Program-made: the position numbers and the translations under genes
In this document: positions 7,238 to 57,134 of the stretch, one piece after another
Layout: each line of letters begins with the position of its first letter
Position numbering within the stretch: position 1 is the stretch's first letter
Assembly (NCBI GenBank): GCA_001643675.2
Contig: LSRY02000034.1
Span: 992,001-1,056,000 of the forward strand
From: Monocercomonoides exilis PA203
Lineage: Eukaryota > Protista > Preaxostyla
DNA length: 64,000 nucleotides
Reading direction: 5' to 3'
Notes under the pieces: model-generated
Database searches by the model: none
What the model was told of the DNA's origin: nothing
Seen by the model: the letters and a program-made list of their open reading frames with translations, nothing else

Positions 7238-8700
7238 ATGATGAAGGTGTCTTATGGAAACAAACCTGGTTGTGAAATTCGAGAAATGTCTCCAACAGAA
7301 AATTTTTCTCGTTTGTTTGTTTCGCTTATTTTTATGAAGCACCTTTCCTTCTGTTATTCATGAAAATTTGAAGAATTGGTTTGTGAACAAGAACAGTGCG
7401 ATGAGAATGCTCAAAGACAGAAAATTGAGGAAATGATCGAGCTTGCTGATAAAATGGAAAGAAAAGAATTTTATTCAATCTTTTCAATTACATTTTACCA
7501 AAAAATCGACAAAATGATTGAAGAAAAGAAATTGTCATGGGGAAACGCAATTTTGTTGTTGAAGCACATGGGTTACTTCAAAAGATTGAAAAACGTTTCC
7601 GATTTCGCATTTGATTATTCCACATTGAAAAAAAGATTTGAAAAGATGGTGATAGAAGAAGAGAAGAAAAAAGAAAGGAAAGATGAGAAGCTATTGGTTG
7701 ATCTTTATGAATGCATTCAACTGCACAACACTCGTCCTGCTTCAGATGATTTCCTGTCAGTTTGTGTGCCATTCCTTATAAAAGTTGCATTGAACAGAGA
7801 GGGAAACGAGGAAACTAGAAAAGAAGTGGAAATTGCATTGCTAACATTAAGTAATGTTGGCCAATATACTGTATGAACATTTTGATCTCATTTTTGATAT
7901 TATTGATTTTTATAAATATTATTTCTCGCAAGCACATTGAAAAAGAACAATTTTTGAGTGAAATTAATGGAATCATAAAACATCATCAAGCACATCACAA
8001 TCTCACTCAGCTCGCCTATCAATCAGCATGGCAGTTTTTCGTAAGCAGATTATTCTATGATGAAAGTTTAGAAGATATTATTGTGAATGAATTGCATTTT
8101 GGAAGAGAGGCAGCAAGTGAAATGAAGGAGCTTTCAAAGAGTGTGAGTTGGAAGAGAAAAAAAGAGGAAGAGGAAAAAAAAGAAGAGAAAGGGGCGTTAA
8201 TTATCGGGAGATGGCTATATTCAATTGAATATTATTTATCCCATTGCAAAATGTGGAATGGAGAGCATTCTGAGCTTATTGGCTGCATTGTTAAGATGTT
8301 TCAAGCATCAAGAGATAATTACAAAGAAATTCACGTTAATTGCCTATATTTATTTAGAAAATCAATAGAAAAGAAAAATGTGAAAATTGAAGACTTGTTG
8401 AATGAAGGAGCCATCGATCTTTGTTCTGATGAAATGAAGCGATCAATTTTGAATGTTGGAATTGCATGGGAATGCTTGCTTTTCTTTTTGAATGTTTCAA
8501 TGCGATTGAAAGAAGAAGATGATGATGAAACAAAAGAAGCGAAAAGAAAAGAGTTGAAAAGAAAGATATATGAAAAGATGGAAGAAAAAGGATATGAAGA
8601 CAGCTTTGTCAGCTTTTATGGAGTTATTTTATTTCTTCATGGTGAATATCAAGATGACGATTTGTCGTTAAATGTTGAAGATTACTTTGCAAATGTTTGA
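7238..8700 (+). CDS. Repeated hypothetical family copy 2, apparently intact (exons 7238-7310, 7374-7870, 7933-8700)
   Basis: GT-AG introns 7311-7373 and 7871-7932 join the exons in frame. Motifs HHNLTQLAYQSAWQF, IVNELHFGREAA, KMEEKGYED. Confidence 0.85.
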
Positions 8701-9005
8701 TGAAAAGCAGTTCCTTGAGATAATCGCTCAATTGATGTTTTTCATTTTATATCATTTCACAAACTGGGAAAATAATCATTTTAAAATTCAAATTGATAAG
8801 GATTATAACTTATTAAAATTATTGCAATTGAAAAGCTAAGGTAATATCTGTTGACAATTTAATTTTTAACATTCAATTTCAAGGATAAATGTGCAAAATT
8901 CTTTCATTTTTGAAAGTAACAATGATGAATTCCAAACTTTTTCTGATATCATATCATCATAAGTCTTTCATTCTTAAAAAAGAAGAAGAAATTGAGGAAA
9001 ATATT

Positions 9006-9404
9006 GGAAAGATTGCACATATGCGGACCCTTTTGATCATAGAACCATAATAATATTTATAGGGTTTAAATGAATTCTTTTTCTGACTTTTGTAGTTGTT
9101 TTAGGGTTAGGGTTATCATAAAAATCTTCTTCAAAAAGTTGTTTTAGGCTGTAGGGTTGTGTCTCGAATCTTCTTTATAGGGTTTTGATGAGAAAAATGA
9201 GTTTTTTTGTTGACTAAATTTTTAGGGTTAGGGATATCAATAAAAAAATAAATGAAAACACAACCCTTTGGGGTGCAGAAATAGCACAACAGGTTAGGGT
9301 GTTGGAACAGGACGAGAAGGATGCGGGTTCGATTCCTCCCGTATTCTTCTTTTTTTTGCAAAAATTTTCAAAAAATGAAAGGTCCGCATAAGTGCATTCT
9401 TGCC
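9006..9404. mobile_element. 399-bp TIR element (MITE), Merlin-like signature, carrying TTAGGG boxes and a tRNA-like unit
   Basis: TIRs GGAAAGATTGCACATATGCGGACC / GGCAAGAATGCACTTATGCGGACC match at 21/24. Perfect 8-bp TSD AAAATATT at 8998-9005 and 9405-9412. Confidence 0.88.
9275..9357 (+). ncRNA. tRNA-derived Pol III unit (A box, B box, T8 terminator); not a functional tRNA
   Basis: A box TAGCACAACAGG at 9282-9293, B box GGTTCGATTCC at 9326-9336, T-run at 9350-9357. Acceptor and anticodon stems do not pair. Confidence 0.55.
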
Positions 9405-9530
9405 AAAATATTTAAAATATTGCGCAGTGCAAAATTCATAATTCAAAAAATTACAAACCAAATTGAATTGACAAATGAAATTACATTGGTTTGGATCAAA
9501 TAAATAATTTGTTTATGAGAATACTCTGAA

Positions 9531-11269
9531 ATGAGTGTGAATTTCTTTTTACGAAATGAAGCTTTTTGAAAATTTAATTAAAATATTAATATTTTTTCAA
9601 TTATCTACTGCCGACAATTGTTGATGCGAAATGCAAAGACGATTTGCCAAATGAACTGATAAATATGTTTGCATCTTTTAATTTTTTTAAAACGGTTTAT
9701 TGGAATTTCGTATTTTGTTGAAAATGCTCTAAATGTGGATTTGTTTTTTCGTTTTCGATGCTGTCAAAGGATTCTCGAGAATTGCGATTATAACACGTTG
9801 CTGGCTCTTCAAAAAGTGAACAAGAAAATGAAAATGCTCGTTCAAAACGAAGTGTTTGTTTAAGACGTTATTCTATTTTTTGGCACTGAAAAAGATTATT
9901 TTAAAAAAAAAAAACATTTTCAGGTTGTGGATGAATCAGTGCTCCTCTTCGTTTCCGCATTTCAGAGAAATATTAGGGCTTAATTCAACAAATATTCAGC
10001 CACTATCTCTAAATGATTGCGGGTTTCGCCCAAGCAAAGAAAACTTAGTTAAATATGGATTAAGCGAGAAAGGATGGAAAAGAACTTTTTTGTGTGAAAA
10101 AATCAATTTGTAATTTTCGTAAATAAATAATTCTCATTCAACTTCTTTTTTTGCTGCATATTCATTGATCTTTTGAGCAGGGCCTATTTGAAAGTTGCCA
10201 ATTCAATTCAAACAGGAAATAATAGGATAAAAAGTGTTGCAAAAAAGAAATATAATCAAGCGATGATTCTTTGGGGAGTTTTATTTGTTTTTCTTTTGAT
10301 TGTTGTGGGACTTGCAATGGCTGGTTGCATGATGATTCCTTTTGCTGCTGAGGCTTTGGAGAAAAAAAGCCGGCCCAATTGCCTTGTGTCTTTTACATTT
10401 AGCGGCATTACTTTCAGCATTGGAGTTGTTGCTGCTTCATTTTATTTTGTTTTTAAAAATTCAGATTGTGGATACTTTTTGTTATTAATTCTGATATGCT
10501 TTCTTATTCCTCCTGCACTGTGGTTGGATGGGGTGATGAAGACCAGCATCTACATTCCTCTTATTCCTTATGAAATAGCATATTTGTGTCTGATATTATA
10601 TTTTGCAAACAGATTTTTGAAAAAATGTGCTTTTTACCCAATACTTTTGAATTTATTGGCGATTGTCTGCTCTTTTGCTTCTTTCTTGTTGGTCGTGCTC
10701 AAAGCTGATGGTATGAACTTATTATTTCGCTTTATTGTTTATTGTTTTGGTTTTATTTTCTTTCTGATTTTGCTTTTTTTTTCACTCCTTTCTTTTGATC
10801 ATTCAATTTTTCTTTTTCGGACAAATTAATTCGTTTTTTATTTGTTTGCTTTTCTTTATTTTTCTTGCTTTTGTTAGGTATTGGTTCTTATTGCTGGACT
10901 ATCTCATTAATTCCTATGTATGTGGCATACTGGTTCGCACACTGCCACATAATTGATTATTTATTTTGCAAAGATCACGATTTGTGTTATTCATATGCTT
11001 GCACTGTCGTTTTGTTCATTTTACTGTTATTGCAATCATTGCTTCTAACTCTCCGGATGGACAGATTTGTGAAAGGGCATTTTTGCTTATATTTTATTCC
11101 GCTGTTTTTGTATATCCTAGTTGGTTTAATAAAGTTGTGTCTATATTCATATTCATTTTGGAGAAAAGCACATAAACATTCAAAAAATGCAATGAATGAC
11201 TGCTATGTGAAGATGCCTCCACCCAAGCCAGCCGAAAATGAAGCCTTACTTTTGTGTTATTTGAAATGA
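9531..11269 (+). CDS. F-box + multi-pass membrane protein (TMEM185/TMEM60-like); exons 9531-9534, 9639-9666, 9770-9853, 9924-10091, 10181-10710, 10878-11269
   Basis: Phase-compatible GT-AG splicing gives MNDLPNELINMILENCDYNTLLALQKVNKKMKMLVQNEVLW, which fits the F-box consensus. Then several hydrophobic helices with repeated LWLDG…IYIPL, LKADG…SLIPM and LRMD…YFIPL motifs typical of the TMEM185 family. Confidence 0.75.
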
Positions 11270-33586: not shown

Positions 33587-33980
33587 GGCAATATTTAAGA
33601 AAGGTGGGCAAAATTGATCTGACCCAGTATAATTATATTTTTAGGGTTAAAATTCAAAAATAATCTCTGTATTAATTGTTTGGTTCAGGTTGTAGGGTTA
33701 GCGTAACAGTTCTTGGGCTTAGGGTTTTGTTCCCGCTCTTCTTTTTAGGGTTTGCGCTCGAAAAAAGTGGTTTATTTTTTGATCAATTTTTAGGGTTAGG
33801 GTTTTGTTATAAATATTTGTGTAAGAAAAGTATAGAAAAATAGAGCACTCTAACCGATCAGCACCAGCGACTTGCTAACAAAATTGCAAGTTGGTGAGTC
33901 GAAGGTTCGAACCCGGAGGGGTGCTCTTTTTTGCCTTTATTTAAATAAAAATTTTTTGCCCACCTTTCTTAAATCATGCC
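33587..33980. mobile_element. 394-bp TIR element (MITE), Merlin-like signature, carrying TTAGGG boxes and a structured Pol III unit
   Basis: TIRs GGCAATATTTAAGAAAGGTGGGCAAAA / GGCATGATTTAAGAAAGGTGGGCAAAA match at 25/27. Left TSD TAAATATT at 33579-33586; the complete right copy is displaced to 37166-37173 by a nested insertion. Confidence 0.88.
33843..33932 (+). ncRNA. Putative ~85-nt Pol III small RNA with a tRNA-like internal promoter
   Basis: Terminal stem GAGCACTC/GGGTGCTC, A-box-like TAACCGATCAG, internal hairpin CACCA-ACTTGC/GCAAGT-TGGTG, B box GGTTCGAACCC at 33904-33914, T6 at 33927-33932. Confidence 0.6.
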
Positions 33981-35309
33981 TAAATTAACCCTGGGTGACG
34001 TGGTGACTTCTGACGTGACATTTTTTATTATTGACGGACGTAACAAAAAATTCCACGACACAAATCAAAACCATAATATCGATTAATTGTTTTAAAATAG
34101 TTAATGTTAAAAATATAATACATTTTATTTAATTTTTAAATCAGAAAAATACAGAAAAATGTTTTTCTCAAATCTTCCATAATTCATTTTTCACTGCCGT
34201 GTAAGCGGTGAACGGAATTTTGACACGTCACTAACGTCAGTGACTCCTGACTCCACTTCAAGTCAGTTTTTCAAAAAAATCAAAAAATGTGGAAGAAGAA
34301 TAAATAAAACAAATCAAATCAAAGAATTCATATGATTACATTTTTGTCAAAGATGCAACCATAAATTTTTGCTTTTCTTTTCATATTGCAACTATTTTGA
34401 TGGAAGAAAAAATCATAACTCCAAAAAATGAAACCCTATAACACCAATTGAAGTTTATCACAATTGCATAAATATTTGAACTGGAATATTTACCAGGTAG
34501 AGATTTATTAAATATTAATCATGAATTAATGTCTTATTCATTGTTAATCGAAATGAGAAAAGCTTCAAAAACCGTTTTTGAAGATCAAACATCTTTCAAG
34601 AATATGCTGAAACTTTAGAAACATTTTGAATCTCCCACTGGATTATTGATGAAAGTTTATTCTGTAAAAGGATTGCCGCAACTGCTTCTTATTCACAATG
34701 GATAACCCAAAAATAAACAAGAAAAAATAAGAGCATATATACACAAAAAAATCTGAATGCTATTAATTGTTGAGGTTTGTGATGTTTTAATTGAATTAAC
34801 CTGTTGTTTGTTTTGACGAGCAATTCGAATTCTCATCAATAATAAAATAATTTCTTCTGCTTTTAAAGAACAAGGTTTTCAATTTTTGTGAACTTTTATT
34901 GCTTCTCGTTTTCTTTAATTTCAAATGGTCAGCAGTTACTCATCATCCGCTTCTCTTGGCTGAAATTGTTTGGAATTCACGGTTAAAGCAAAGTTAATGA
35001 AGAGACCAGATAAATACATAACGACAAGAAGAGGAGGAGATACAGCTCGGAGAAACGAGATAGCAAGATTCTTTCTATTTATTAAAAGAATATTATGTTC
35101 AAACCAGTTATTCACGGTCAATTTTCAAAGAAAAAATGAAAAGAATAAAGGATGTGTCTTTTTTTAATTGTTTTTGTTTATTCGTTCTATCGAAATGAAG
35201 TGCAGTTAATAATTTTGTTCAAGAATAGAATCTGATTTCTGTTTATTTTTTTTCCCCGTGAAATTGTGATAAATGCAATAGTTTTCATGAATAAAAATTT
35301 ATCTTTCTC

Positions 35310-36730
35310 CTTTTTTTGGAATTCACATAATAATCAGAAACCACTAACAACATTTCAGTATAAAAATTTCTGTCAAGAAAATCAAACATTTCACCTTTGC
35401 TTGTTTTGACATCTTCACATCCATCTTCTTCCATCCTTTCGAATGATCGTCATTTCAATCTCTTTCTTTTCGCTTCTTCCATTTCTTCTTTCTCCTCTTC
35501 TTTCAATCTCGTTGTAATAATTTGAAAGAATTCCAAGCTTTCTCATGTGATCCTGCAATTCAATGTTTGCCTCTGAATTTCCTCCTAAACAGCATAAACA
35601 ACTCCTTCTTTCTGAAAAGCACCAATTTTTACAGTCCTGTTTTATGCTTCTCCTTTTAAATATTCGAGGCATCCGCCGAGAAAGTCTGGACAATTTTTCT
35701 TTGATGCTCGATGCACCTGAACAATGCTGTTGATAAGTTCAACGTATTCTTCATTCCAAAATGTGCATGAGTAAAAAAAATCGAAAATTGTTGTTAACCA
35801 TCTCCTTAATATAAACTCTTCTTTCTCTTCTGTTACTCTTTTTTCTTCTTTTCCTCTCCCCCAATCAATACATCTCATCAACTCTTCCAATTCCCTTCTT
35901 GCCTCTCTCCAAAAGTGCAGCTCATTTTCAATCTCTCTCTCCTAGTTTTTGTTATTGCCCAATCTGTGGATCAAAAACGACTAAGCACATTGATAGGCGA
36001 GTAGTGAAAAATTGTGATGCTTCTGATGATATTTAATGATTTCTTTGATTTTTTTCTAAAAATGGTCTTTTTTCATTTCCTTAAAAAAAGTAAATTATAT
36101 CAATTAAATGAAGAAACGACAATTCAAAATTTATCAATAAACAAATCAAACCGAACACATATTAGAATTGCTCAGAGCCAGCAAAGCCATTTCCACCTCA
36201 TTTAATGTTTTCTCGTTTTCCTCTTTCCTCGATACAGCGTTCTGGTGCCATGGCATACAAATCGATTGTATTTCTGAAGAAGTCATAACTTATAAAAAAA
36301 ACAGCATCTACAAAGATTAATCAGCAGTTTTTCGTTCTTTCCTTCTTTCTTATCGTTTTCGTCAATTATCATCCTTTCAAATCTTTTCCTCATATAAATT
36401 TCTGAAAGGCTTGAGTGATTATTCTTTTCAGCTTATTGCAATATCTCAATTGCTCCAACAATAGAAAGATATTCACAATCGATATTATCATTTTTTCGTT
36501 CATCTTTCATATTTTTTCGATGGTTCAGCAGTGAAAATAGAGTAAATATTGAAGATATTCATATCCTTCATTACTTCATTCATTTCTTCGATTTTTGTTT
36601 CTTCCCTTCCTCAATGCAATCACAAGTTTACAAAATAATTCTGACATTCAAAAAAAAAATAAACAAATGCAATTATCATGACTTTTATGCTAAATTAAAA
36701 TTTCGCACCCATGTATTTTTCTGTGTTGTA
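35310..36730 (-). pseudogene. Repeated hypothetical family copy 5, heavily decayed
   Basis: Fragments ELHFWREARRELEELMRCIDW, WNEEYVELINSIVQV, EVEMALLALSN and VSDYYVN, with multiple stops and frameshifts. Confidence 0.8.
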
Positions 36731-37038
36731 CAATTTATATCTTTAAGATAGGAAATAAAATTTAGCATGCATTGCCATTTTGATTTAAAAAGAGAATTTG
36801 CATATTCTTTCACTAAATAAATCATGCCATATTATTAACACAAAAAGCGCAAAAACCATTCCTGTGCCTACACAATTCTTTCGTACACATGCATTTTTTC
36901 ACAACTATTAATGCAAAACATAGTTTCATTTTTTATAAATTTACGTTGTAATGGGATTTTTGTGAAATACAAAATTCTTTTGAAGACGTAGTTTAACATG
37001 CCATAATTAACAAAATATTTTTTCCCAAAAAGAAAAAT

Positions 37039-37039
<1 letters not shown>

Positions 37040-37102
<63 letters not shown>
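37040..37102. repeat. Poly(T) tract of ~63 nt
   Basis: Directly visible, just inside the right end of the 3.2-kb element. Confidence 0.95.
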
Positions 37103-37103
<1 letters not shown>

Positions 37104-37248
37104 AAAGTGGAAAACTGGTGACGGACGTGACGATATTTTTTCTTCACGTCACCCAGGCTTAGGCCTAAATATTTAATTTCAATGAAAATTGAAAATTGAA
37201 ATTAATAAATTAATAGATTGGACTTAAGATCATAACCATAATAAAAAA

Positions 37249-42326: not shown

Positions 42327-45300
42327 ATGGGAATACCAAAATTATTCAGGTATTGAAACAATGTATTATCATTTTAAGTAAAATTATCACCATTGTTGCG
42401 CAGATGGATAAGCGAGAGATATCCGTTGATTTTATCGCCAGCTAATGTTTTTACTTGTCCTGAAATCGGTTTTTCTCTTAAATATTTGACTTTAATTCTT
42501 TATTCAATTTGAAAAACGTCATGTTTTTTTTGTAAAACAATTATTGAACGAAATAATAAACATTTGCAAATTTAACAATTAGACAATTTATATCTTGACT
42601 CAAACGGAATTATTCATAACGCAACGCATGGGAATCAAGGAATTACGCACCAGCTAACAGATGAAGAAATGATAGCAGGAATATTTCAATACATTGATAG
42701 GCTATTTCAGATAGTTAAGCCCAAAAAGCTTCTTTATATTGCTGTTGATGGTGTTGCTCCACGTGCAAAACTGAATCAACAACGATCTCGCCGTTTTAGA
42801 ACAGCTCGTGATAGAGAAATAGCTGTTCAAGAAGCAAGAGCAAAAGGGGAAGATGTACCAACTGAGGTGTTTGATAGTAACTGCATCACTCCTGGTACAG
42901 AATTTATGTTTAGATTATCGGAGTGGCTTAAATACTATGCATCAATAAAAATGAGTACCGACAAAGCCTGGGCTGGTGTTAGTGTTGTTGTGTCTGGATG
43001 TGACACACCTGGCGAAGGAGAACACAAGATCATGTCGTTTATTCGCGCACAGAGAAGCCAGCCAGGATATGACGGATCGACTTCGCATTGCATTTACGGG
43101 CAAGATGCAGATCTGATTATGTTGTCACTTGCTACCCACGAGCCAAACTTTGTGGTACTTCGAGAAGAAGTTAAGTTTGGGAGTGCCAATAGCGGTGGAG
43201 GCGGGGGAAAAGAAGACGACCGGCCAACAGCGGACAAAACACAATTCCAGTTTCTGCACATTACACTTCTGAGAGAGTATCTGGAGAAGGAGCTGAGCGG
43301 GGTGAAAGGGCGCCTGCGCTTCGAGTACGACTTCGAGCGGCTGATTGACGATTTCGTGCTTCTATGCTTTTTTGTGGGCAACGACTTTATTCCGAAGATG
43401 CCTGGGCTGGACATTGCTTCAGGCTCGCTCAGTGAGATCTTCCAGTTGTATGTGGAGCTGCTGCCGTCGCTGCCAGACTACATCACTAACCACGGGCGAG
43501 TGGATTTCCGGTCTTTTGAGAGGATCTGCCAGGGTCTGGCGTCGATGGAAAGGAGCCATTTTGCTGAGCTCGATGAGAACGAAGAGACTTTCGGGTCAGG
43601 GTCGTATTCACGCTCGTCTGGAAAAGGCGCAGGCGAATGGAAAGACGGTGAGTGGGTGAGTGGAGGAGGCGAAGGGATGCAGCAGAAGAGCGACAGAATC
43701 TGCTGTGACCACGTCGAACAGAACACACAACACAGAAATTTGGAGCAAGACAGCACTTCCAGTGCTAATGCATTAGGCACACCGTTAACATCTGCTGCTT
43801 CTCTTTCTCCTGCACATGCCTCTGCTCCTCATCAGCTTCCTCATCTTTCTCCATTTGACATCGCTTTGAGATGCCCCTCGTGGCGTTCCTCGTATTACAA
43901 GCGCAAGTTCGGGTATTCTGCGCCACCGCTGTATGTTTCTGAAGCGTGCATTGTGCATTCGAAGGATAAACACCATCTGAGAGAGGCTGCAAGAGAAATG
44001 AGGGGAGACGACGAGGAATATGAGGGAGAGGAAGATGGAGAAGGAGAAGAAGAAGGAGAAGGAGACTATTATTATGGCAACAAAGAACTTGGTGGTTATT
44101 CGCGCACATCATCAAAATGGGAGAGAAAAGGAGGGCTGATCGAAAGGCCTGATCAATACAGCAGCACACAATCTCAATCACAACCGTCTTCATCATCATC
44201 ATCTTCTTCTCCTCATTCACTTGTCCCCAAGCGCTCGTCTGTGTTTGATCCATCGCGTGAGCGGCAGTTCAGTCTGCACAGCACCTCCACTCCGCAGCAC
44301 AAGCCCTTCCGCGATCTCGTCTTCCATTACTTAGAGTCCATCCAGTGGGTCTTTTCCTATTACATCTCTGGCTGCCCGTCCTGGGGCTGGTTCTATCCTT
44401 ACCTCTACGCCCCGCTCCTGTGCGATCTGTGCGACTTGTCTTCCTTCCCCCCCATCGCCTTTGTGGAGGACAAACCTCTCCTTCCCTTTGAGCAGCTGCT
44501 GGCGGTGCTGCCGACAGCGTCGTGTGCTCTGCTTCCAGCGCCGTTCAGACCGCTTATGCAGAGCGAGGAAGTGGTGGTGAGGCAGAAAGTGGATGAGGAA
44601 GGGAACTTTGTGGGGAGTGCGTTGCTTGTGGGAGAAGGAGGAGGAGGAGGAATGGATGGGAATGAGGATGAGGATGATGAAGGAGATGATGATAACAAGA
44701 AAGCTATCAATGAAGATTATTCTTCAGCTGCGGGTAAAGCCGCAGCAGGGCAAAGCGAACAAATCGAAAAGAAGAAGAAAACAAAACTTAGAACAGTTTC
44801 GCGCCGTTTTATTTCTCCGATCGCGGCATTTTATCCGAAGGAGTTTGAAGTTGACATGGAGTTCTGCAAGATGCCATGGGAAGGGGTGTGTGTGCTGCCA
44901 TTCATCGATGTGGAGCTGCTGAAGCAGACGGCGCAGACGATCTATCCTCTTTTGTCGAGTTTGGAGCTGCGGCGCAACCAGCACCAGTTCAGCACTTTGT
45001 TTCGGTCTCCACATCATCCAGACTTCAGAATGGACATGATGCTCATCTCGTTCATACAGGAAGAGAACGAAAGAGGAAACGGAGGAGAAGCAAATGGAAT
45101 TAATTCTTCTTCTTCTTCTTCTGCCTCATCCTCTTCTCTATACAAACACCCTCTTCCTTCACACACCCATCTCTTGTCGCATCTCTTCCCTTCTTTTGTT
45201 CTGACTCCCCCAATCGACCATCCTGCTTTCCTTTCTGTTTCCAACTGCCGAATTGTGCAGCAGCCCGCGGTGCCCCACGACACACGGCCGATGCTGGCAG

Positions 45301-48300
45301 ACACTTCTCTGTTGGATCGAATGATGGCAGTGGTGGACCAGGTGAAGGAAGGAGATGAGGATGAGGAGGAGGAGGAAGAGAAAGAGAAAGAGAAAGAGAA
45401 GAAGACAGGGAAGCAAGCTGAGAAAGCGGAGAGGAAAGAAATCGAAGAGAAAATAAAGAGATTCAAAAGGATGAAGATGCAAAACAAAGAAAGAATCCAA
45501 AAGTTGCACAATCTTGTTTTCCCACCTGCTTTGCAGACTCCGTCTTCTTCGTTTATTCCTCCGAATCTTTTAGCTACTGCCTTTCCGAATGAGCAAGATA
45601 AAACTTTATCATCATCATCATCGCCATCAGCTTCAGCAAAAGAGAAAGAGAAAGAGTCAGAATCAAACACGCGAATGATCCATTCAGAAATATCTTTCCT
45701 CCGAACAGAGTTCAAAATTATCGTTTCTCTCTTAAAATACGCCAATGTTGCTTATCTTCCTCCGCCATACTCACTCCAATCAAGCACTTCTCCTCTTCAT
45801 CTTCATTCTTCTTCTTCTTCCTCTTTCACTTCTTCCTCTTTCTCTCTCCAAAAGCCACTTGCCCTTCCTTCTGCTTCTCTTGTCCGCCCCTGGCGAGAGC
45901 GAGGCCTGTCTCTCTCTTCATTCATCCTTCCTTCTTATCACCCACGTGCCAGGTTTCCCTCTCTTTACACACTTCATCCAGCATCTTTGTCATTCTTCAT
46001 CAAACACACACAGCATGTGAGTGGAGTCACATTCAACTGGGAAAGAATTAAGAAGAAGATGATCAAAGAGGACGAGATGGATCAGGAAGAAGTTGAGAAA
46101 TCGAATAATTTTATGTCTTCTTCTTCTTCTTCTCAGTTCAATGGAACAGAAAATGGATTGAACGACAGCCAACAGAAGAAGAAGAAGAAGAAGCCGTTGG
46201 ATTTGAGTGGAGGCGACAGGCTAGAAAGAATCGTGCCATTTCGCCGTTTTGGAACAAAAGCAGACAGAAGCCGGCTTTTGAAGATGAAGAACGAGAAGAA
46301 AAGCATCAGCGAAATGAATGCAGAGCTGATGATATCGAAAATGAGAGGGGTGAAAGGGATGAGTGGTATAGGGACATCAGAAGAGGAGGAGGAGAAGAAG
46401 AAAGGAAAAGAAAGTAAAGAGATTTCTTCTTCTTCTTCTTCTTCTTTGAGTGGAAATTCATCATTGAATGGAATAAATGCTCGATTTGGAAGTGGAAGAG
46501 AACCAAACACACAACAAGGAGCACAAAATGCTCGTGTGAATGATCCATTCATGGAACTGTTCAGCAGAATGAACATTAACGTCAACGTAAAACCTGTTCA
46601 GAACAAGCAAAATACTTCTAATTCAACTTCAATCCCTGTTTCTTCTTCATCTTCTTCTTCTCTTTCATCGTCTTCTTCAACCACTTCATCATCATCAACT
46701 TCATCATCATCACCAACAACCCAACAACCTCTCCTTCAAGCCCAACCTCCAGCAACTGATCCTCTTCCCTTGCCTTCAGTCATCAAAGAGATCAAAGCGC
46801 AAGTCTTCTCTTTCCTCTCCAGACAGCCGTCGCGTGTGCTGAATGTGGAGAATGCTCTGTTTGTGTCACACAGATACCATCCATTCACACTTCCTTCAGC
46901 TGCATTGATAGACAGAGAAGAGACAGACAGACAGAGAGACATGCAGAACGAGAGGAGAGGAGGAGGAGGAGGAGGAGGGTACTGGGGAAGCAGTGGCAAT
47001 AACAGCTATGGAAGATCAGGAAGGCCGCAACACGCAGGGATTGGATACAACAATGAAAGGAACACACAACATCAATCAAACCAGTCTAATTTTGTCAGCA
47101 GTCAAGGAGATTCTGGAAGCTATTGGGGCAGTCAGAAATCAAAGACATCAATTGAACGGCCTCTTTCTCTTGCTGATCCTTCTTCTTCTTCAATCTCAAC
47201 AACCTCGTTTTCTTTCCCTGCCTCTGTGACAATTCCTCCATTGCATCTTTCGTATCTCCTTCGCTTTCTTGTTGGAGCTGTTGTGTACTTCAACTATCCT
47301 CATCTGAGACCAGGGAGAGTGTGCAGAGTGGAGGCAAAGGGAATTGGCGGTTGGGTGCTCAATCCGAAGGCGTTGAAGGAAGAAGAAGAAGAGGAGGAAG
47401 AAGAAGAGGATGAGGAAGATGTTAATGAGGAGGGAGAAGAGGAAGAAGGAGAAGATGGATATGGAGCTAATTATAAGGATGGATCAGCAAATATGACTAA
47501 TAAATACAACTCAGCCGAGCAGAAGAAGAAAAGAGAGGCAGCAAGAATTCGAAGGCTGGCGAAGATGGAAGAGAGAGACGAGGAAGATGTGATGCAGAGA
47601 TTGGAGCTTGTCGACGAGAGCGAAGACGATTCTGTGTTTGAACTCGACGAAAACGATAAGCAAATAGCAAACGGAACAGCAAACAATACAACTTCATCAT
47701 CTTCTGCTAATAATAATAATAACAATAATATAAAGCAAAGCAAAGCTGCTTCTTCCTATTCCTTGAAGTCCAATCCCACACCCGATCCTTTCTTCCCCAA
47801 TTCCATTCTGTCTTTCATTCCCCCCAAGCGCAAAGCGAAAATCCTGCGCCGTTCTCTTCCTCTGGAGACATCTTCTCAATTGGAACACCATTCAGTCTCA
47901 ATCAACCCGATGGCTGTGCAGAACCCATGGAATCAGCAGCAGAAGGCATCAGCTCAGACAACTTCACAGGCAAAAGGAGGGTTTGCTGCTAAACAACAAA
48001 TGTATTCATCATCATCTTCTTCTTCATCTCCCTCTCAAAATGCCCCTTCTCCTTATTCCACCACACACACACGGGAGTCCAAAGAAGATGTGGCAGAGTT
48101 TGTGTCGAGGTGTGAGAGTCTGAAGCAGCAGCTGCTGCAGAGAAGAGGGATGGAGATAGGCGATGTGAATGTGCTGTGTTATGTGCAGCCGCTGGTTGCG
48201 ATGAAAGTGGAGGAGAAAGCAGAGAAGAAGAAGAGGAGGAAGGGGAGGAAGGGGAGAGGGAACGGGAAGAGGAGTGGAGGAAGTGAAATGAATGAGGGAG

Positions 48301-51300
48301 GAAATGATTATTATGATGAAGAAGGAGACGATTCAGAAAATGATGAAGACGATGAGGAAGAAGAAGGCAAAACGAACAAAGCAGACTGGAAGAAGCCGAA
48401 GAAGACGTCAGGAGGAAGAAGAGGAGGGAAGAATGGAATTGGATTGTGTGTCATTTCTGACAAGTCGAAAGAGGTTGTGAATGTGAATGAGGCAGACGAA
48501 GAGGAAAGGCTGCTGAATGAAGCGAGAAGGCAGCAGCAGAAGAAGAAAGCAGAAGAGATGAGGAAGAAGAAGAAAGCAGAGGAGGAAGAGAAGAGAAAGA
48601 AGGAGCAATTGAACAATGCTGCTTCTTCTTCATCAGCTGACTCAGTACAAAATAAAATGAAACATAAACGTCATATTTTGTCAACTGATTCTTCATCTCT
48701 TTCTCTTCTTTCATCATCTTCTTCTTCAATGAGCCATCTTCGTGTTGTTCCTGAATACGACGATGGAGGCATTGTGTGTGTTCCCATTCAGCTTTTAACA
48801 GCTCTGCCTGTTGTGGATGATGGAAGGTTTATTGATCTGACGAGGAAGAGGAGGGAAATGCTGATAGTGGCAGAGCGGATGGAGGAGGAGAAGAAGCTGA
48901 TGAAGATCAGAGAAGAGAGAAGGAAGAAGAGAGAGGAAGAGGCAGAGAAGATGAAGATACTCACAAAGCAGTTTGGGTTGAGCTTGGGAATTGGAACAGG
49001 AATAACATCAGAAACTGTGAAAAGCGAGGAAAAGAAGGAGAAAGATGAAAAAGGAAAAGGAAAAGGAAAAGTTGAAGAGAGCGATGAAGATGATGATGAA
49101 GAGGAGGAAGAAGAATTATTGGGAAAAGAAACTGAAAATGTAGAAAAATCAAAAGAAGGCAAACTAAAAGAAGAAGACGATGAAGACGAAGAAGAAGATG
49201 AAAGCGACAACCGTATCACTTCATCAGCGTCTGCTGCAGCGCTTTCGACTGAATCAGCCGGTTTGAATGACATTCGCCATCTGTTTGATGTTGGGAGGCT
49301 TGTTGTTGTTGGAGGGACAGGAGTGGAAGTGCTGTCAGTGACAGCAGTGAGAGAGAAGACTGTGAGGAGGAAGGAGAAGAGGAAGAGATGGGTGCAGAAG
49401 GAGAAGGAGCAAAAGGAGAAGGAGAAAGAGAAGGCAGATGAGAAAGGAGAAGAGAAAGCAAATGAATCAGAAGCCACAGCAGTGTCAGTTGAAGAGGAAG
49501 AGTATGAAGAAGAGATTGTTGACACGAAGACAGAAAAAGCGCCTCAGCCGATTCTGTCTATACCCCATCCGCTTGCTCTGCTGGGTGTTGGGGGAAGAAT
49601 TGTGGCATCGCCTGAGGATGTGAGGAGGATGGACGAGAACAGCAGGAGACACAACAAGAAGATGAGGAGGAAGATGGCAAGGGAAAGGGAAAGTGGAATG
49701 GCGAATGAGAAAGGGAAAGAAGAAGAAGAAGAAGAAGAAGAAAGAGAAGAAGAGAATGAAGCAGTTTCGTCACTCTGGGACGAGGAAGATGAAGGAGACG
49801 AAGAACAAGACAAGTTGGAGTCGATGAAGATGAGAAGGAAGGCATTTCCGACAGCTTTGAAGGGAGATTGCGTGATTGTGGAGTTGGAATACAATGCTCT
49901 TGTTTATTCTGAGCATTTTGCCACTTTGAATCCATCACCAAATGATGAAGAATTAAGCTCAACATCTTCTTCTTCTTCTTCTTCTTCTCATTTCACTCCA
50001 AACATCTACTCAAACATCCCTCCCTCTCTCATTCGTGCACACATTGTATCTCATTCGTGTCCTTCTTCTTATCTGCCTGCTTTTCCTTCTCTTCCTTCTC
50101 TTCTTAACAAACAGTCAGAGAAAGACAGTTCTGATGCCTCATCTCCTCCTCATGTGTCCATCCATCCGTATCATTCATTTCTTTCCTCTTTCTCTTCTTC
50201 TCTTTCTTCTTCCTTCACTCTTTCTCCCCTCTCCTCCCACAGCTCTTCTCTTCTCCCTCCTCCTTTCTCTCTCTTCACCAAGTTCCTCTCTCCGTTCACA
50301 CCCGAAGCACAGAACTGGTACACCCTCGACGAAGCTGCTGCCATTGTTGGGACGACTCCTGTTGCCATTGCTTGCCTCACCAGCGTGTTTGTGGTGACTG
50401 TGAGGAACTTCTCATTCAATGCGTTTTCGGCAAAGGGGAAAGGAAAAGAGAAGGAGAAAGAGAAAGAAAAGGAAAAAGAAGCAGAGAAAGATAAAGTATC
50501 AAATGGAATGGAGAAATTGAAAGCGCTTTTTGCTTCGGCGAAAGAGAAAAGCGATGGAAAAAGCACAGAAACCACACAAAATTCAGCTTCAGCCTCAAAA
50601 TTTGTTTATTCTCCTTCGCAAAAGACAGATGCACCGTCGCCTCTGACACCTCTTTCTCCTCTTTCTCCCAACAGCCAGTCAAGTCTTTCCACTCCTCCTC
50701 TGTCTCCTCCGACTTCTGCATCTTCTTCTCCTTCTTCATCGTCTTCTTCGTTGCTGGCTAATCCAAACACTGCTTCTTCTGTTTCTCCTTCTCTTCTTTC
50801 CCCTCTCACCACGCCTCCCCTTTCTCCTTCTTCTCCTTCTTCTCTTTCACCTTCTGTTTCTCCTTCTCCCTCTTCTCTTTCTCTTTCTCCTTCCTCCCCA
50901 TCTTCTGTGACTGAAATGTTCCATCCAGTTTGTGCTCCTTCTTCTTTGGCATCTGAAATGCCTCCGATGATGACAATCAACTTTGCTTTTCCTTTTTGCG
51001 ATCCAAAAACAAACATCCATTCGCCTTATTATGCACGCTTCAACTCAACCACACGTCAAGTTGATTATTCTGACGCTGCCATTGATCTTCTTCGTGAGTA
51101 CAAGACTCGTTTTCCTTCTGTTTTTTCCTTTGTTTCGTCGTCTTCGCATGTTGGCTCTTTCCTTTCGCCTTCTTCTGCTCTATCTGCCTCTGTAGCTGCT
51201 GGCCAGACCTCCTCATACATTCGCAAAGTGAATGCCACACAGATCATTCCACAAGGCACACACGAAGCATTCGATGAGCTTGTGTCATTTCTCTCGTCGG

Positions 51301-54300
51301 CGCAGAAGGAGAGGGCGATGCGGGGCTATGCAGGACACACGACGCTGATTGCGACGAAGGAAGGGGTGGAGTCGGTGATGAGGTTTTATAAGGAGACAGG
51401 GTGGGGCAGGATTGTGACGAGTGCTGATGAAGAGAGCGTGCAGAAGAAGTTTATTGATAAGAGATATAAAAATAGGAAGGGGAATGAAGAGAAAGAGAAA
51501 GAAAATGATAAAAAGATAAATGCAGTTGAAGACAAAACAACAAGCAAAGAAGCCAATGAAGACGCATCGTCTTCAAAGAATGCCTCTCGTCTCCCTCATC
51601 TTCCCCACGCCATCAACACCCCCACAAAGGCCATCCATCTGATTGTGCGAGCACGTGTCTCTCTCTCTTCTCTCATCACATCCTCCAGCGATTCTGTCAT
51701 TGGCACCTCAAAATACACAGGAGGAGAGCTCAGAGTGGGAGACAGAGTGGTAAATGTGTCATCTTCAGGTGCGGTGCCGTTCGGGCTGACTGGAACTGTC
51801 GTGTCTTCCACGACATTCACAGCGTCTGGCAGCGATGTGGAACAGCAGTTTGCTGCTTCTGGTGCTGATGAAGAGGAAGAGGAAGAGGAAGAGAGAGGAA
51901 AGGGAAAGAAGGAGAAAGAAGGGAGTGTTGGATGGCTGCAGCAGGAGGCAGCGATGAGTGGACGCACTTTTGGCTCTAAGCAGAATGAGTCTTATTCAAA
52001 TGCTCTGATCTCTTCGACTGTTCCACCAACAAATCTGAATACAAATACGAACTCTTCAAAACCACTGCCAAATCTGTTTGCTTCTGCGCTGTCAAAATAT
52101 CGCTCTTCTTCTTCTTCTTCTTCGAATTCATATTCTTCTCGTTTCCCATCATCATCCACATCATCATCATCTTCTTCTTCCTCTTCCTCTTCTTCATCTG
52201 TGTATTCCCCATCTCCACTCCGCACCTCCTCTGTCCTCTCCTCCACCCACCCGTTTCTCCTCTACCCATCCAAAAATGCTCCTTCCCCTTTAACACAGCC
52301 AGCAGGCGTGGGTGTTGACAAGTTCAGCGGCGACTCACATCTTTCACGTGCGCTGAATCCGAACCAGACAGTCGATGTTGTTTGGGATGCTCCGTTTATG
52401 AATGGCTCTGATCTGCACGGGAAGGCGCCTCTGATGCAGGGATCAGTGGCGTGTGTGAGCAGTCTGTACAGATATGCGACGTTTGTGCAGCAGAAGGAAG
52501 GGGCAAAGGGGAGAAAAGATGATGCGAATGAAGTGAATGGAAGAAGAGGAAGAGGAGGAGAAGCAGAAGGAGAAGAGGAATATCTTTATGCCCCACTTTC
52601 TGCGGAGTCTCTGTCACTTGAGGATGTTCTGAGGGAGTACAGCACATTCCAGTTGAGAGCGAAGAAGGCGTATGAAAACATTGCAGGCAGAGAAAAGATG
52701 AGATATCGAATGCTTTTGGAGAATGGGATAGATTCTGTGTCTTCAATTGTGCAGCAGGCATTCAATGAACAGTTGGTTAAACCTTCTTCTTCTTCTTCTT
52801 CTTCTTCTTCATTGACATCCTCAAAACAACGTTCTTCTTCTCGTCTTTCAGCTGATCAGTTCATTCGATCTGCGTTTTCGTTGTATCGGCTGACGTTGTG
52901 GCCGATCTTCCCCATCCCTCCCACGCAATACAAGACTGTTGGGTTCTACTCGAAACTTGCTGGAAAAAGAAGGAAAGAACTGAAGAAGACGAAGAAGGAG
53001 CTGAATGAGGGAGAAAACACAGCTGAGAAGAAAAGGCAGCTGAAGATGAAGATTCAGCAGCAGACGAAAGAAGACGCGAAGATTGTCATTCCGTTTGTGG
53101 AAGATGCTCGTCTGCCAAAAGTGCTGATGGAGTATGCAATTCGTCCACTCACCCAGAGGGAGAGGCAGAAGCCAGTGTATTTGATGCAGTCACGGTATGG
53201 AGGGTATGGAGGGTATGGAGGAAGTGTAAATGGAGGAGGAGGAGGAGGAGGAGGAATGTACAGGAGTGGAGGCTATCAGAGCAACAGTGCTGGATTCAGT
53301 TCATATTCATCGCAGCAGAGCCAGTCAAGATTCGCTTCGTCTTATTCATCGAGTGATTCTTCTGCATTGTTGTCTTCTCCTTCTTCTTCATATTCATCAT
53401 CATCATCATCTTCTTCTTCTTCTGGAAAATCAAAAGCGTCAGTTGCAATTCCACCTCCTGCCTCGCTTTTGGGAAGCAGCCAACAAAGTTCAACTTCTTC
53501 TTCTTCTTCTTCTTCTCAATTCAACTATACTCCTTCTTCATCTTCCTCTTCTTCTCCTTCCTTCAAAATAATCTCAAAACCTTCTGTTGCAATTCCGCCG
53601 CCTTCTTCTTTGCTTCCATCAAAGCCATCTTCTGCTCCTCTTCTTTCGAATCCTCAAATTTCCAAATCGAAACAAGAAGAAGCATCACAAGTTGGTTTGT
53701 TGCCAACACCAACATCTTTGCAATCATCATCATCATCATCATCTTCTTCTTCTTCTTCGTCGTCTTCTTCTCTGCTACCCACTCCATCAAGCGACTCAAA
53801 GGGAAGCACAACAGGGCGAGTGCTGACGTTTTATGAGAAGCAGCAGCTGAGAAAGAAGGAGGAAGAAGAGAGAAGAGCGAAGGAGAATGAAGGAGCAGAC
53901 AGCTCTGCGCAGACAGCTATCAACAAGAATGTGCTTCTGCCAACGCCGAAAGCAGCAAAAGAAGCAAAAGAAGCAAAAGAAGAGGAGAAAGAAAGCGAAG
54001 GAGCGAAAGAGAAGACGAAAGTGCTGTCATTTTACGAAAGGCAGAAGCTGCTGAAGGCTCAAAAGGACAGCCAAAGCAGCCAGACACAAAAACAAGAGAA
54101 TGCAAATATGACACAATCTTCATCTTCTTCAGAGGACAAAACGGTTCAGTCAGAAAATGCAGAAAAGCCACCAAAAGTGCTGTCGTTCTATGAAAGACAG
54201 CAGCTGCTGAAGAAACTGAAAGAAGAAGTGCTCAAAACAGACAAGCCATCAGCTGCTGAAGAGAAGAAGAAAGAAGAAGAAGGAGAAGAAGGAAAAGAGA

Positions 54301-57134
54301 AAGAAGCAAAAGAAGCAGACAAAGAAGGAATCTTGCCAGACGCGTCAGCAAAGCCGCTTGCCAAGCCGTTATCGTTCTATGAAAGACAGCAGCTGAGGAA
54401 GAAAGAGCAGGAAGAGAAGAAGAAGAAGATGCAGCAAGAAAAACAGACATCCAATGAAAGCAATGAAACACCGGTTTTGTCACCTCCTCTGTCACCACCT
54501 GTGCTTTCAAAGGAGCCAGCTGCATTGTCACTTTCCTCTTCTTCTTCCTCTTCTTCCTCTTCTTCTTCCTCTCAAACCGAAGTTCCAATTCTTCCAAAGC
54601 CGAAAGTGAGAAAGCCAACGTTTGCGTCGCAGTTGCTGGCGAAGCAGATGCGGCCGAAGAAAGAGGCGTTGATGAACCAGTCGTATCTGCTGCCGATTCC
54701 GCTGACACACACGACGCCGCTACAGAGCGAGGTGGATGAGTGGAACAGGAAGGAAGCAGAGAAGCGGGTGAAGATGTTGGAGGAGGTGAAGAAGAAGATG
54801 CTGAGCGGGGAGCTGGAGGCTGGGTTTGTGCTGGATGACGAAGATGACGAAGAAGATTACGATAATGAAGGCAATGATGCTATTGCTATCAATGGGATTG
54901 GTTTGAAGGAGAAAGATCGGATGGATTCAGAAGCAGGGAAGTTTTCGTATCAGCCGAATGTGTTTGGAGGAAAAAGCAAAACACTCAGCTTATCGAATGG
55001 AGCAGGCAAAGTAGTGGAAGACGGCAGAAGAGGAGGCAAGCAGAACAGAGGGATCACGCTGAGCATTGAGGAGGAAGAAGGGTTTGGTGGGGCAGAAGAC
55101 GAAGAGATGGCAGCGCTGCTGTCAGACACGCTGGGTCTGTCCTCGTCCAGCCAAGTTATGCCCCATCTGGTGGCCAACACTGAACTCCGCGACCGCTCAT
55201 TCGCTGCGCCGCACCTGACAGCGAGCGGACCGTCAGCCACAAAGCGATCGAAGAGGCAGAGAGAAGCAGAGCGGCAACTGAAGCAGGTGGATCGGGAGAG
55301 GATGAGCATGACAGCACAGTCTATGGTAGCAGTAGATGCGGATGCGGGAGAAGAGGAAAAGAAGAAGGAGAAGGAGAAGGCACAGCGGATGATTGAAGAG
55401 CTGTTTGCGAGTGCTGGTCTGAAGGCTGGGCTGAATCGAGAGGAGAAGCGCGTGAAGCAGCAGAAGATGGCAGAGCTGTCGAAGAAAGCATCAGAAATGG
55501 AAGCATCTGCCACAACTTCCTCAACAGCGCAGGTGATGTCGCTGATGATGGGCTCTCTTCCTCCACCACCTGCCGTTGATGCAAAGGGAAGTCAGCAAAA
55601 GAACAAGAAGAGAAACAGGGATGTGAATAATAAAGCGTCTGTAGCTGCGACTATTCCAACTCCTACTGCAAGAGTTTCTGCTCCATTGCTGCCTCCTCCA
55701 TCATTAACATCATCAACTTCATCATCTTCTTCTTATTCAACAAATGTGGATTCTTCAAACAGATTCTCTTATAATCCGATGCCTCGTTTGCCTGACAGCA
55801 CCAAAAAATCGATTGATAAAACAGAAACAGAGCAAAAAGAGAGGGAGAAAGTATTGAAATTATTGCTTTCAGCACCTCTTCCTCCGCCTCCCGTTGCAGT
55901 TCCCCTTCTGAAAACGCCACCACCTCCTCCATTGCTGACTGCTCGCTCATCATCATCATCTTCTTCTTCTGATCCTTCTTCCTCTTCCTCCACCTCACCT
56001 CAATCTCCTCCATCGAAGCTAAAGATTGACTCGCCTGTGTTTGTGCCTCGCGCCCTCCCATCAGCCGCAATGCCTCCATTGTTTGGCAGCACAGAAGCAG
56101 CAATGGCACAACCGAAGAAGGCAAAGACAAAGGCGAAGAAGACGGCAGAAGAGCTGCAGATGGAGAAAGCAGATAGAGTGATCAAAGCATCGCTTTCGAA
56201 TGATTTTGATATTCTCCGCTACACAACAGCATCTTCTGTGAAGCCGAATCTTCCTTCTTCTTCATCTTCAGGTGCAATGCCATCCAACCCAATTGGGCTG
56301 GGATATGAGCAAGACGAGCTCGACATACACGACATAGGCGAGCGGAACAAGCTGTTCTATCCACACATCGATCCCACGGTGCTGGCTGAGCAGAGGTTGA
56401 AGCAGGAAAGGAAGGAAAAGAAGGAAGAGAGAACTGGGGCAAGAATGGAAGTACAGCAAGGGATGGAAGAAGCACAGCTTTTTGTGCACATTCCAGTTGG
56501 TGACAGAGATGTGGAGATGGAAAAGGAAAAACAAGAGGAAAAGAGGAAGATGAGAGAGAAGCAGTATTTGCAGCAGCAGCAGCAACAACAACAGCAGCAG
56601 CAGCAGAGAGCGAATGATATTGGAGCGAAGCAAGGAGCATTCAGAAGCGAAGGACAAGCCCAAAACGATATGAGACGACCGACTTTGTTGCAGAAAGCTT
56701 CGATGCCTCAGCCTTTACTTTCTCTGAACCACACAAGCACAGCCAATTCAGCTGCAAAAGACAGCTTAGCTCAACCATCGCAAAGGAAAGCAGCCAGCAC
56801 GCTGCCTTCTGCCCCACAAAATGCATCTGTGTCGTCTGTGCCATCGCAGGCACGCTCTCCTTTCTCCTTCGAAATGGACGATGAATTGGATGATCCGTTT
56901 CTGTCGATGCTTCACTCGTCTTCTTCAGCTGGCACAGCTGGCTCATCTGTCTCGCAGCTGCATCATGCGTCGCTGTATAACACGCGCATTCCGCTACCTT
57001 CCTCATTTATTCAGGATCCGCACAAAAGGTGGCAGGCAGAACAGGCCAGAACAACCCAGCCTGGCGGCACTCACAGCTTGGCAAATCAGAAGTTCGCATA
57101 CAATCCATTTTTCAATACAGAGGGGAAGAAATAA
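42327..57134 (+). CDS. XRN1: 5'-3' exoribonuclease 1, giant (~4879 aa); exons 42327-42349, 42404-42468, 42583-57134
   Basis: MGIPKLFRWISERYP, DNLYLDSNGIIH, AVDGVAPRAKLNQQRSRRF, FDSNCITPGTEFM, PGEGEHKIM, YGQDADL, GNDFIP, SWGWFYPYLYAP, PFEQLLAVLP. XRN1-specific downstream segments include LRVGDRVVNV…VPFGLTGTVV and VDVVWDAPFMNG. Confidence 0.95.

Follow-up and report, generated by a model that had tools for sequence, protein, structure and literature searches.

Family A and its ends

The window considered here is a stretch of 64,000 nucleotides from Monocercomonoides exilis, in which positions 9006-9404 are occupied by a 399-bp miniature inverted-repeat transposable element (MITE) termed family A. 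Its placement in the Merlin superfamily, as a multi-copy element, is secure. Inside it, an array of telomere-like motifs, all on one strand, is followed by a degenerate segment of tRNA-gene character that carries RNA polymerase III (Pol III)-type boxes and ends at a T-run; the two parts together are referred to as the module. Alignment identifies this interior as homologous to the 3' non-coding region of a compact clade of autonomous Merlin elements.

Elements of the Merlin/IS1016 type are typified by GG-terminal terminal inverted repeats (TIRs) and 8-bp target-site duplications (TSDs). The 24-bp TIRs and the perfect 8-bp TSD that the first-pass annotation of this DNA had described are both present, with AAAATATT standing on either side of the element (Table 1). 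Copies were sought in the Oxford Nanopore Technologies (ONT) assembly of M. exilis PA203, which comprises 82,301,135 bases in 101 contigs (Treitli et al. 2021, PMC8767320, its Table 1). This search of the host's own genome recovers nine full-length copies on various contigs, 80-93% identical, together with fragments. An alignment that includes the flanks shows homology ending precisely at the TIRs, beyond which the DNA is unrelated, the exception being a segmental duplicate (L003/L005). Perfect 8-bp TSDs, whose sequence differs from copy to copy, flank six of the eight independent copies. With up to three mismatches allowed, the family A TIR has 18 matches in the genome, every one of which is an end of a family A copy, and control sequences have none. 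The family A MITE was mobilised through its TIRs with duplication of 8 bp of target. The earlier call of a MITE is thereby upheld, the copy number lying above one and the TSD measuring 8 bp across copies. The ORFs that overlap 9006-9404 are chance frames of at most 76 amino acids, and the window copy is not a recent insertion, since it diverges by 4.3% from the family A consensus.

Table 1. Features of the family A element and of the related family B element (window coordinates)
Feature	Position	Strand	Remarks
Left TSD copy, AAAATATT	8998-9005		8 bp, identical to 9405-9412
Left TIR, GGAAAGATTGCACATATGCGGACC	9006-9029	+	24 nt, 21/24 complementary to right TIR
Subterminal motif TTGATC..ACC	9033-9046	+	common to related Merlin families; 7/14 columns invariant in A, B, C and G
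Telomere-motif box 1, TAGGGTT	9060-9066	+	column block conserved between families
Doublet TTAGGGTTAGGGTT (boxes 2-3)	9101-9114	+	contains TTAGGGTTAGGG at 9101-9112
Telomere-motif box 4	9152-9158	+	
Block CTTCTTTATAGGGTTTTG with box 5	9168-9187	+	best conserved interior block; 12/20 columns invariant over four families
Doublet TTAGGGTTAGGG (boxes 6-7)	9222-9233	+	anchors the genome-wide module pattern
AATAAA and AAATAA hexamers	9239-9252	+	poly(A)-signal-like; read from sequence
Degenerate tRNA-derived segment	9275-9347	+	tRNA positions 1-73 by box register
A-box-like TAGCACAACAGG	9282-9293	+	fits T-R-G-C-N-N-A-...-G-G
Additional TTAGGG	9294-9299	+	
Hairpin, GAAGGATGCGGG / CCCGTATTCTTC	9316-9349	+	12-14 bp; 10-nt loop contains remainder of B box
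B box GGTTCGATTCC	9326-9336	+	11/11 to consensus GGTTCGANTCC; 7/11 columns invariant over four families
T8 run	9350-9357	+	Pol III terminator-like; 23 nt inside right TIR
Right TIR	9381-9404	-	reverse complement matches left TIR 21/24; GG starts both
Right TSD copy, AAAATATT	9405-9412		perfect match to left copy
Family B MITE, TIR GGCAATATTTAAGAAAGGTGGGCAAAA	33587-33980	+	six TAGGGTT boxes; collinear with the 9006 element

Telomere motifs and the tRNA-derived segment

The pentamer TAGGG occurs eight times on the + strand of the element and not at all on the - strand. TAGGGTT starts at 9060, 9102, 9108, 9152, 9178 and 9223, and the earlier description of about six same-strand (T)TAGGG boxes, two of them in the form of doublets, proves accurate. 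The telomere repeat of the host is TTAGGG, and the doublet TTAGGGTTAGGG corresponds to two exact host units. The array also reflects an internal duplication of about 120 bp, in which 9099-9124 matches 9220-9245 at 88%. Across the 64-kb window TAGGGTT is found 14 times against 2.45 expected, a number reached by none of 100 shuffles, and 12 of the 14 occurrences sit in the two MITEs at 9006-9404 and 33587-33980, all on the + strand. The boxes are no general promoter element, because only two of the 14 occurrences lie outside these MITEs and TAGGG is found within 200 nt upstream of just one of 26 tRNA genes. Motifs of the TTAGGG type are bound by telobox Myb proteins, including the plant telobox proteins and yeast Tbf1. 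As a separate observation on telomeric DNA, a variant unit, GGGTTCAAACTAGG, recurs within TTAGGG arrays at different chromosome ends (e.g., C1 2710699-2710803 and C10 1732463-1732589).

A and B boxes are the binding sites of TFIIIC in tRNA genes and related Pol III units. The A box, the B box and the T8 run just inside the right TIR all stand where the first-pass annotation had placed them. The two boxes are 44 nt apart from start to start, which equals the distance from tRNA position 8 to position 52, and the same spacing is found in family C. Genuine tRNA genes of this genome have a T4-T8 run that begins 1-7 nt past their 3' end in 26 of 26 cases. The modules of four families align over their full length to genuine host tRNAs better than 300 of 300 shuffles; among the 12 distinct host tRNA sequences compared (8 anticodons), that of family A is closest to tRNA-Arg(ACG). 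In pairwise scoring, the modules are no closer to each other than to real tRNAs, with the exception of the C-G pair. The segment is structured, with fold z-scores of -2.2 in family A (-2.24, five of 200 shuffles folding equally well), -4.8 in family B and -3.3 in family C, and its 3' end is paired in all three. Families A, C, E, F and G have a block ATAAAAGAA after the doublet, and in family A poly(A)-signal-like hexamers lie between the second doublet and the tRNA-derived segment. Two poly(A) signals have been reported for M. exilis, matching AATAAA and AAATAA, with mRNA cleavage 20-30 nt past them (PMC8767320).

The upstream regions of true tRNA genes were compared with those of the modules as well. 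Many true tRNA genes (loci L043-L072) show an A-run about 20-25 nt before position 1, then a pyrimidine-rich stretch and CAA or GAA immediately ahead of the gene. When a weight matrix built from the upstreams of 26 true tRNA genes is applied to the module upstreams, the fraction of background reaching the module scores is 0.02-0.44. A promoter element shared upstream of tRNA genes and modules is thus not supported, the likeness being weak and not significant.

Autonomous relatives, spread and conservation of the module

Merlin elements in M. exilis are already known, as transposase-bearing families only: more than 100 copies in at least seven families, with TIRs of 23-29 bp and TSDs of 8 bp, have been described for M. 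exilis/Monocercomonoides sp. PA203 (Lopes et al. 2021, PMC8101967), in a paper that mentions MITEs, tRNA and telomeric motifs nowhere. In the present assembly, matches to the IS1595/ISXO2 DDE domain (PF12762) number at least 575; 150 of these candidates were scored, and every one passes the cut-off. Ten loci were sampled, of which eight proved to be compact elements, 1.4-1.9 kb long, bounded by GG-TIRs and perfect 8-bp TSDs. Many candidates have unbroken frames of 300-670 amino acids, and the figure published for the older assembly, "over 100 copies", is exceeded several-fold.

The closest view of the module in a coding element is given by an autonomous member of family C (L034:866-2347, minus strand; 1,482 bp; TSD AGTTTCAT), a locus that is also present in the supplement of PMC8101967. 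Its ORF of 271 amino acids matches PF12762 with an E value of 1.2e-24, and a protein search places the product among eukaryotic ISXO2-like transposases. The subterminal motif TTGATC..ACC lies between its TIR and the transposase ATG. On the sense strand 3' of the ORF follow TAGGGTT-type boxes, TTAGGGTTAGGG, AATAAA, a tRNA-like segment, a T-run and the TIR; the block CTTCTTTATAGGGTTTTG is found in this element as well. Its tRNA-like segment has an A box TGGTCTAGTGG and a B box GGTTCAATTCC that are 44 nt apart. In the autonomous elements of the clade, which are about 1.5 kb long, this segment ends about 25 nt short of the right TIR. The transposases of families C and D are mutual closest relatives, with 45-49% identity versus 28-41% to others, and a metagenome scan with an alignment of the two families' transposases found no relatives. 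The claim of Merlin membership is thus borne out by GG-TIRs, 8-bp TSDs and homology to an element that encodes a PF12762 transposase. The related expectation, that Merlin DDE ORFs would be flanked by the same TIR as the window element, holds in part: DDE ORFs accompanied by the same module exist, but their TIRs are related to those of family A, not identical.

Family C also includes MITEs of 399-400 bp whose TIRs are identical to those of L034. Their positions 1-43 correspond to the 5' end of the autonomous element and positions 144-400 (257 nt) to its 3' end at 95%, and the middle 100 bp form an extra telomere-motif unit that has no counterpart in the autonomous copy. A simple internal deletion of L034 was considered as their origin and is rejected, because these 100 bp are absent from it. 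The MITE lineage gained a second telomere-motif unit of about 100-120 bp.

MITE families A, B (33587), C and G (L016) are collinear from end to end at 53-64% identity, and their TIRs differ. Family B has six full-length genome copies that are 85-97% identical; in the window copy a segment of about 90 nt folds into a long closed stem, with the B box GGTTCGAACCC and a T6 end. The wider distribution was explored with a strict pattern (doublet, 78-108 nt, GGTTCRANNC, 8-32 nt, T6), in which T6 was required after an earlier doublet-to-B-box pattern had been swamped by telomere arrays. Outside telomeres it matches 19 distinct loci, which fall into at least six sequence families, and the reversed control matches none; for families E and F and for the D-like MITEs, the sequence considered is the first 80 nt of each pattern match, together with hit tables. 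Genome searches with family B and family C queries give 55 and 30 candidates, respectively. More than 15 loci match positions 20-218 of family B, its telomere-motif half, at 78-87% and then continue into a D-type tRNA-like segment (e.g., C30:976709-976903, C10:693505-693698 and C9:941063-941257). Such junctions are suggestive of a tRNA part that has been exchanged or renewed between families.

Several further observations concern the surroundings of these MITEs. On the + strand of contig C30, module MITEs of three families (D-like, A and B) are located at 976889, 1001222 and 1025790, the last two being those at window positions 9222 and 33790; their spacing is about 24.3 and 24.6 kb, a regularity that may be due to chance. 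An element with termini TAACCCTGGGTGACGTG occupies window positions 33977-37173 and adjoins the family B MITE, and a family A copy (L026, C80 669593-673939) harbors a similar element of about 2.9 kb, with an 8-bp duplication, CTCGAATC. The same 8-bp site has been hit by two different elements in separate family A copies, L026 and L027 (C26 661731-663606); one insertion is about 470 bp long with TIR TAAACATGTGT, the other about 2.9 kb with TIR TAACCCTGGG. This coincidence may reflect a target-site preference.

Conservation between families was assessed as invariant alignment columns among one representative each of families A, B, C and G. The telomere-motif blocks have 38 of 65 columns invariant (Fisher versus spacer, 8e-9) and the B box plus T-run 12 of 19 (1e-4), compared with 43 of 216 in the spacer and 12 of 48 in the TIRs. 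The telomere-motif boxes and the B box plus T-run are thus about three times better conserved than spacer and stand above the TIRs too, a comparison that carries the caveat that aligners anchor on repeated motifs.

The neighbouring DNA is transcribed. RNA was examined as assembled contigs from four metatranscriptome libraries of one study at a likeness of at least 90%, and contigs of the flanking genes cover 8592-8768 and 10304-10711 at 100% identity. The start of an F-box gene that had been placed about 125 bp downstream of the element is not confirmed: only a short frame follows the ATG at 9531, and the spliced, expressed gene seen in the RNA contigs is covered from about 9850 on. The F-box match itself, in the ORF at 9669-9863, is sub-threshold, with 18.8 bits against a Pfam cut-off of 20.5 bits (E 0.0015). 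Elsewhere in the window, 42669-57134 (+) is one uninterrupted ORF of 4,821 amino acids, in which the N-terminal, helical and SH3-like domains of an XRN 5'-3' exonuclease lie far apart, with very long inserts between them.

Possible role of the module and known counterparts

The element at 9006-9404 is a decayed copy of family A, a non-autonomous Merlin MITE, and its interior derives from the 3' module of a Merlin clade; taken as a whole, this reading, in which the module would serve active elements in cis, is probable. A role in cis is favored because the boxes, the B box and the T-run are conserved between families and the TIRs and spacers are not. An IS1595/ISXO2-type DDE transposase, supplied in trans, recognized the GG-terminal 24-nt TIRs and brought about insertion with an 8-bp duplication. 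For the module, the following is proposed. In active elements, signals of the AATAAA type would end the transposase mRNA 20-30 nt downstream, just short of the tRNA-derived segment. This segment would then constitute a separate type-2 Pol III unit or TFIIIC site at the edge of the element; it would yield a transcript of about 75-80 nt, or form a roadblock of bound protein just beyond the transposase poly(A) site, or both. That it acts as such a separate unit is the favored though tentative proposal, with a chance about even or somewhat below. The telomere motifs are most likely bound by a predicted host TTAGGG-binding factor of the Myb type and not by the transposase; a host factor fits better because the boxes are the same whatever the TIRs of a family, and because family D does without them.

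A number of results weigh against this account. ARAGORN finds no tRNA in the element, in eight related loci or in the whole window, and Rfam searched with E up to 10 gives only chance-level matches, none of them to RF00005, for the element and four related loci. The folds predicted vary from family to family, being either hairpins or long closing stems, and none is a cloverleaf. Since there is neither an ARAGORN nor an RF00005 match nor a cloverleaf fold, the tRNA part is supported as a tRNA-gene relic, in which promoter-type boxes and terminator have been kept and the cloverleaf lost, rather than as a tRNA gene. Between families, the A box has only one of 12 columns invariant, and that of family B is poor. 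Among eight independent family A copies, the telomere boxes exceed spacer slightly (0.908 versus 0.862, p 0.03) and the Pol III boxes do not (0.851 versus 0.862, p 0.65). The expectation that boxes would be better conserved than spacer DNA is therefore satisfied between families by the TTAGGG boxes and the B box, but not within family A by the Pol III boxes. This pattern fits constraint on source elements followed by neutral decay of inserted copies, and within the family it gives no sign that the window copy is maintained. No contig lies over 9038-9505 in the four RNA libraries, although standard assembled contigs would miss a short structured RNA. The host has one locus for the TFIIIC B-block-binding domain (PF04182; 45 bits), on contig C16 near 1,279,100, which is weak evidence, as a control with the same profile also matches seven of 14 prokaryotic genomes and the match is not specific. 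Neither a TIR scan nor an element search of the assembly found an autonomous element with family A's own TIRs, the element search giving no hits confined to the ends, and the nearest TIRs, those of the family G MITE and of autonomous L038, are only moderately similar; the family A TIR is likewise not in the text portion of the supplement of PMC8101967. Finally, the autonomous family D element (L037; ORF of 355 amino acids) has the tRNA-like segment and T-run without any TAGGG box, and at least five sampled Merlin families lack the entire module, so that the module is not needed for Merlin transposition in general.

With regard to the missing partner, orphan or cross-mobilised MITEs are common, and the lack of a same-TIR element does not exclude Merlin membership. 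A passive passenger is a possible though doubtful alternative: an ancestral Merlin element would have captured flanking DNA that held a tRNA gene together with an interstitial telomeric tract, or would have landed next to the two and moved one TIR outward past them, and the functionless cargo would owe its apparent conservation to recent shared ancestry and recombination between families. The unconstrained Pol III boxes among family A copies, the lack of a tRNA fold and of a transcript contig, and the many Merlin families that manage without the module all agree with such an origin, and recombination does occur, as the families are mosaic (in the D-like MITEs, a stretch matching positions 20-218 of family B at about 85% is joined to a different tRNA-like part). 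Shared ancestry alone, however, predicts even divergence, whereas the boxes, B box and T-run stand about threefold above spacer and above the TIRs; tRNA spacing and terminator placement have survived the loss of the cloverleaf, and at least six families have retained the module, in autonomous as well as non-autonomous members. Also conceivable is an action of the relic on the transposase transcript itself, through 3'-end processing or stabilization, such as an RNase P or RNase Z cut comparable to that of the MALAT1 mascRNA, rather than as a Pol III unit. The relic is sense-oriented at the extreme 3' end of the autonomous element and is structured with a paired 3' end in families A, B and C, as an RNA-level role would have it. 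Such a role is nevertheless unlikely, given that AATAAA/AAATAA lie about 25-35 nt upstream of the relic and cleavage 20-30 nt further on would end the mRNA first (PMC8767320), that RNase P and RNase Z require a tRNA-like acceptor and T-arm where no tRNA-shaped fold is predicted, and that conservation is concentrated in the promoter-type B box and the T-run.

Repeated short motifs in DNA transposons are often transposase sites, as in Ac/Ds and En/Spm of the hAT and CACTA groups. The TAGGGTT boxes might accordingly be subterminal sites of the Merlin transposase, their likeness to telomeres being coincidental. Although short internal repeats are often bound by transposase and these boxes are conserved between families, the idea is slightly less probable still than a role in the transcript: the boxes occupy one strand without a mirror at the other end, families with unlike TIRs have them in the same form, L037 is devoid of them, and the array is absent from five further Merlin families that show TSDs, two of which also keep an unbroken transposase frame; moreover, the doublet consists of two exact host telomere units. 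A tRNA-derived short interspersed nuclear element (SINE), i.e., a retroposon lying between inverted repeats by chance, would account for a tRNA-derived head with A and B boxes, yet its probability is close to nil. The copies end precisely at TIRs with fixed 8-bp TSDs, there is no A-rich tail or tail derived from a long interspersed nuclear element (LINE), the relic is at the 3' rather than the 5' end, and an autonomous relative encodes a DDE transposase; SINE identity is excluded by the TIRs, the fixed TSD and this relative.

Returning to the cis-acting module, a more far-reaching proposal is that a Merlin clade in an oxymonad keeps a tRNA-derived Pol III/TFIIIC unit and telomere-protein sites as functional cis docking modules, the tRNA part being renewed or exchanged, and that a small RNA or a boundary would shield the element and its neighbours. 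This would be a DNA-transposon counterpart of the SINE head, spread by MITEs; it is speculative and less likely than not to apply in full. The literature searched offers no earlier example of a Pol III cassette inside a DNA transposon or MITE, nor of MITEs in Monocercomonoides. What is new is that the Merlin elements of M. exilis have MITE derivatives, that members of one Merlin clade, whether autonomous or not, bear a conserved array of telomere motifs together with the relic of a tRNA gene, and that conservation in these elements is highest in the telomere motifs, the B box and the T-run, where it exceeds that of the TIRs. Should the relic bind TFIIIC or give rise to a transcript, this lineage would be seeding a compact genome, in which untranslated regions overlap, with Pol III units or boundary sites and with sites for telomere proteins; if it is inert, the elements still show clearly how a cut-and-paste transposon can capture a tRNA gene and carry it along. 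In either event, the families help to classify part of the 35% of repeats listed as "unclassified" in the M. exilis assembly.

Compared with known systems, the element resembles Merlin transposons, the eukaryotic relatives of bacterial IS1016/IS1595, in its GG-TIRs, within the range of 23-29 bp, its 8-bp TSDs and the ISXO2/IS1595-type DDE transposase of its autonomous relatives; unlike the published Monocercomonoides Merlin families, it is non-autonomous. Its telomere motifs resemble teloboxes and interstitial telomeric motifs, being short exact host-telomere units in non-telomeric DNA that are one-stranded and conserved, but here they are confined to one transposon clade and are not general promoter elements in the genome sample. 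tRNA genes and B-box-only TFIIIC sites act as chromatin boundaries or Pol II roadblocks in yeast and mammals. The relic is comparable to such extra-TFIIIC sites and tRNA genes in that a perfect B box is conserved apart from tRNA function, between the end of a Pol II gene and neighbouring DNA; it differs in being the cargo of a mobile DNA element in a metamonad. Like tRNA-derived SINEs, the element contains a decayed tRNA gene whose A and B boxes have kept the spacing of a tRNA and are succeeded by a T-run. The first-pass annotation had spoken of a "DNA-TE/SINE hybrid", of which the DNA transposon carrying a telomere-motif array and a tRNA-derived A box, B box and terminator stands, and the SINE half is an analogy only, with no hallmark of retroposition: in contrast to SINEs, this element is moved by a DDE transposase via its TIRs, has a fixed 8-bp TSD and no tail, and bears its tRNA part at the 3' end.

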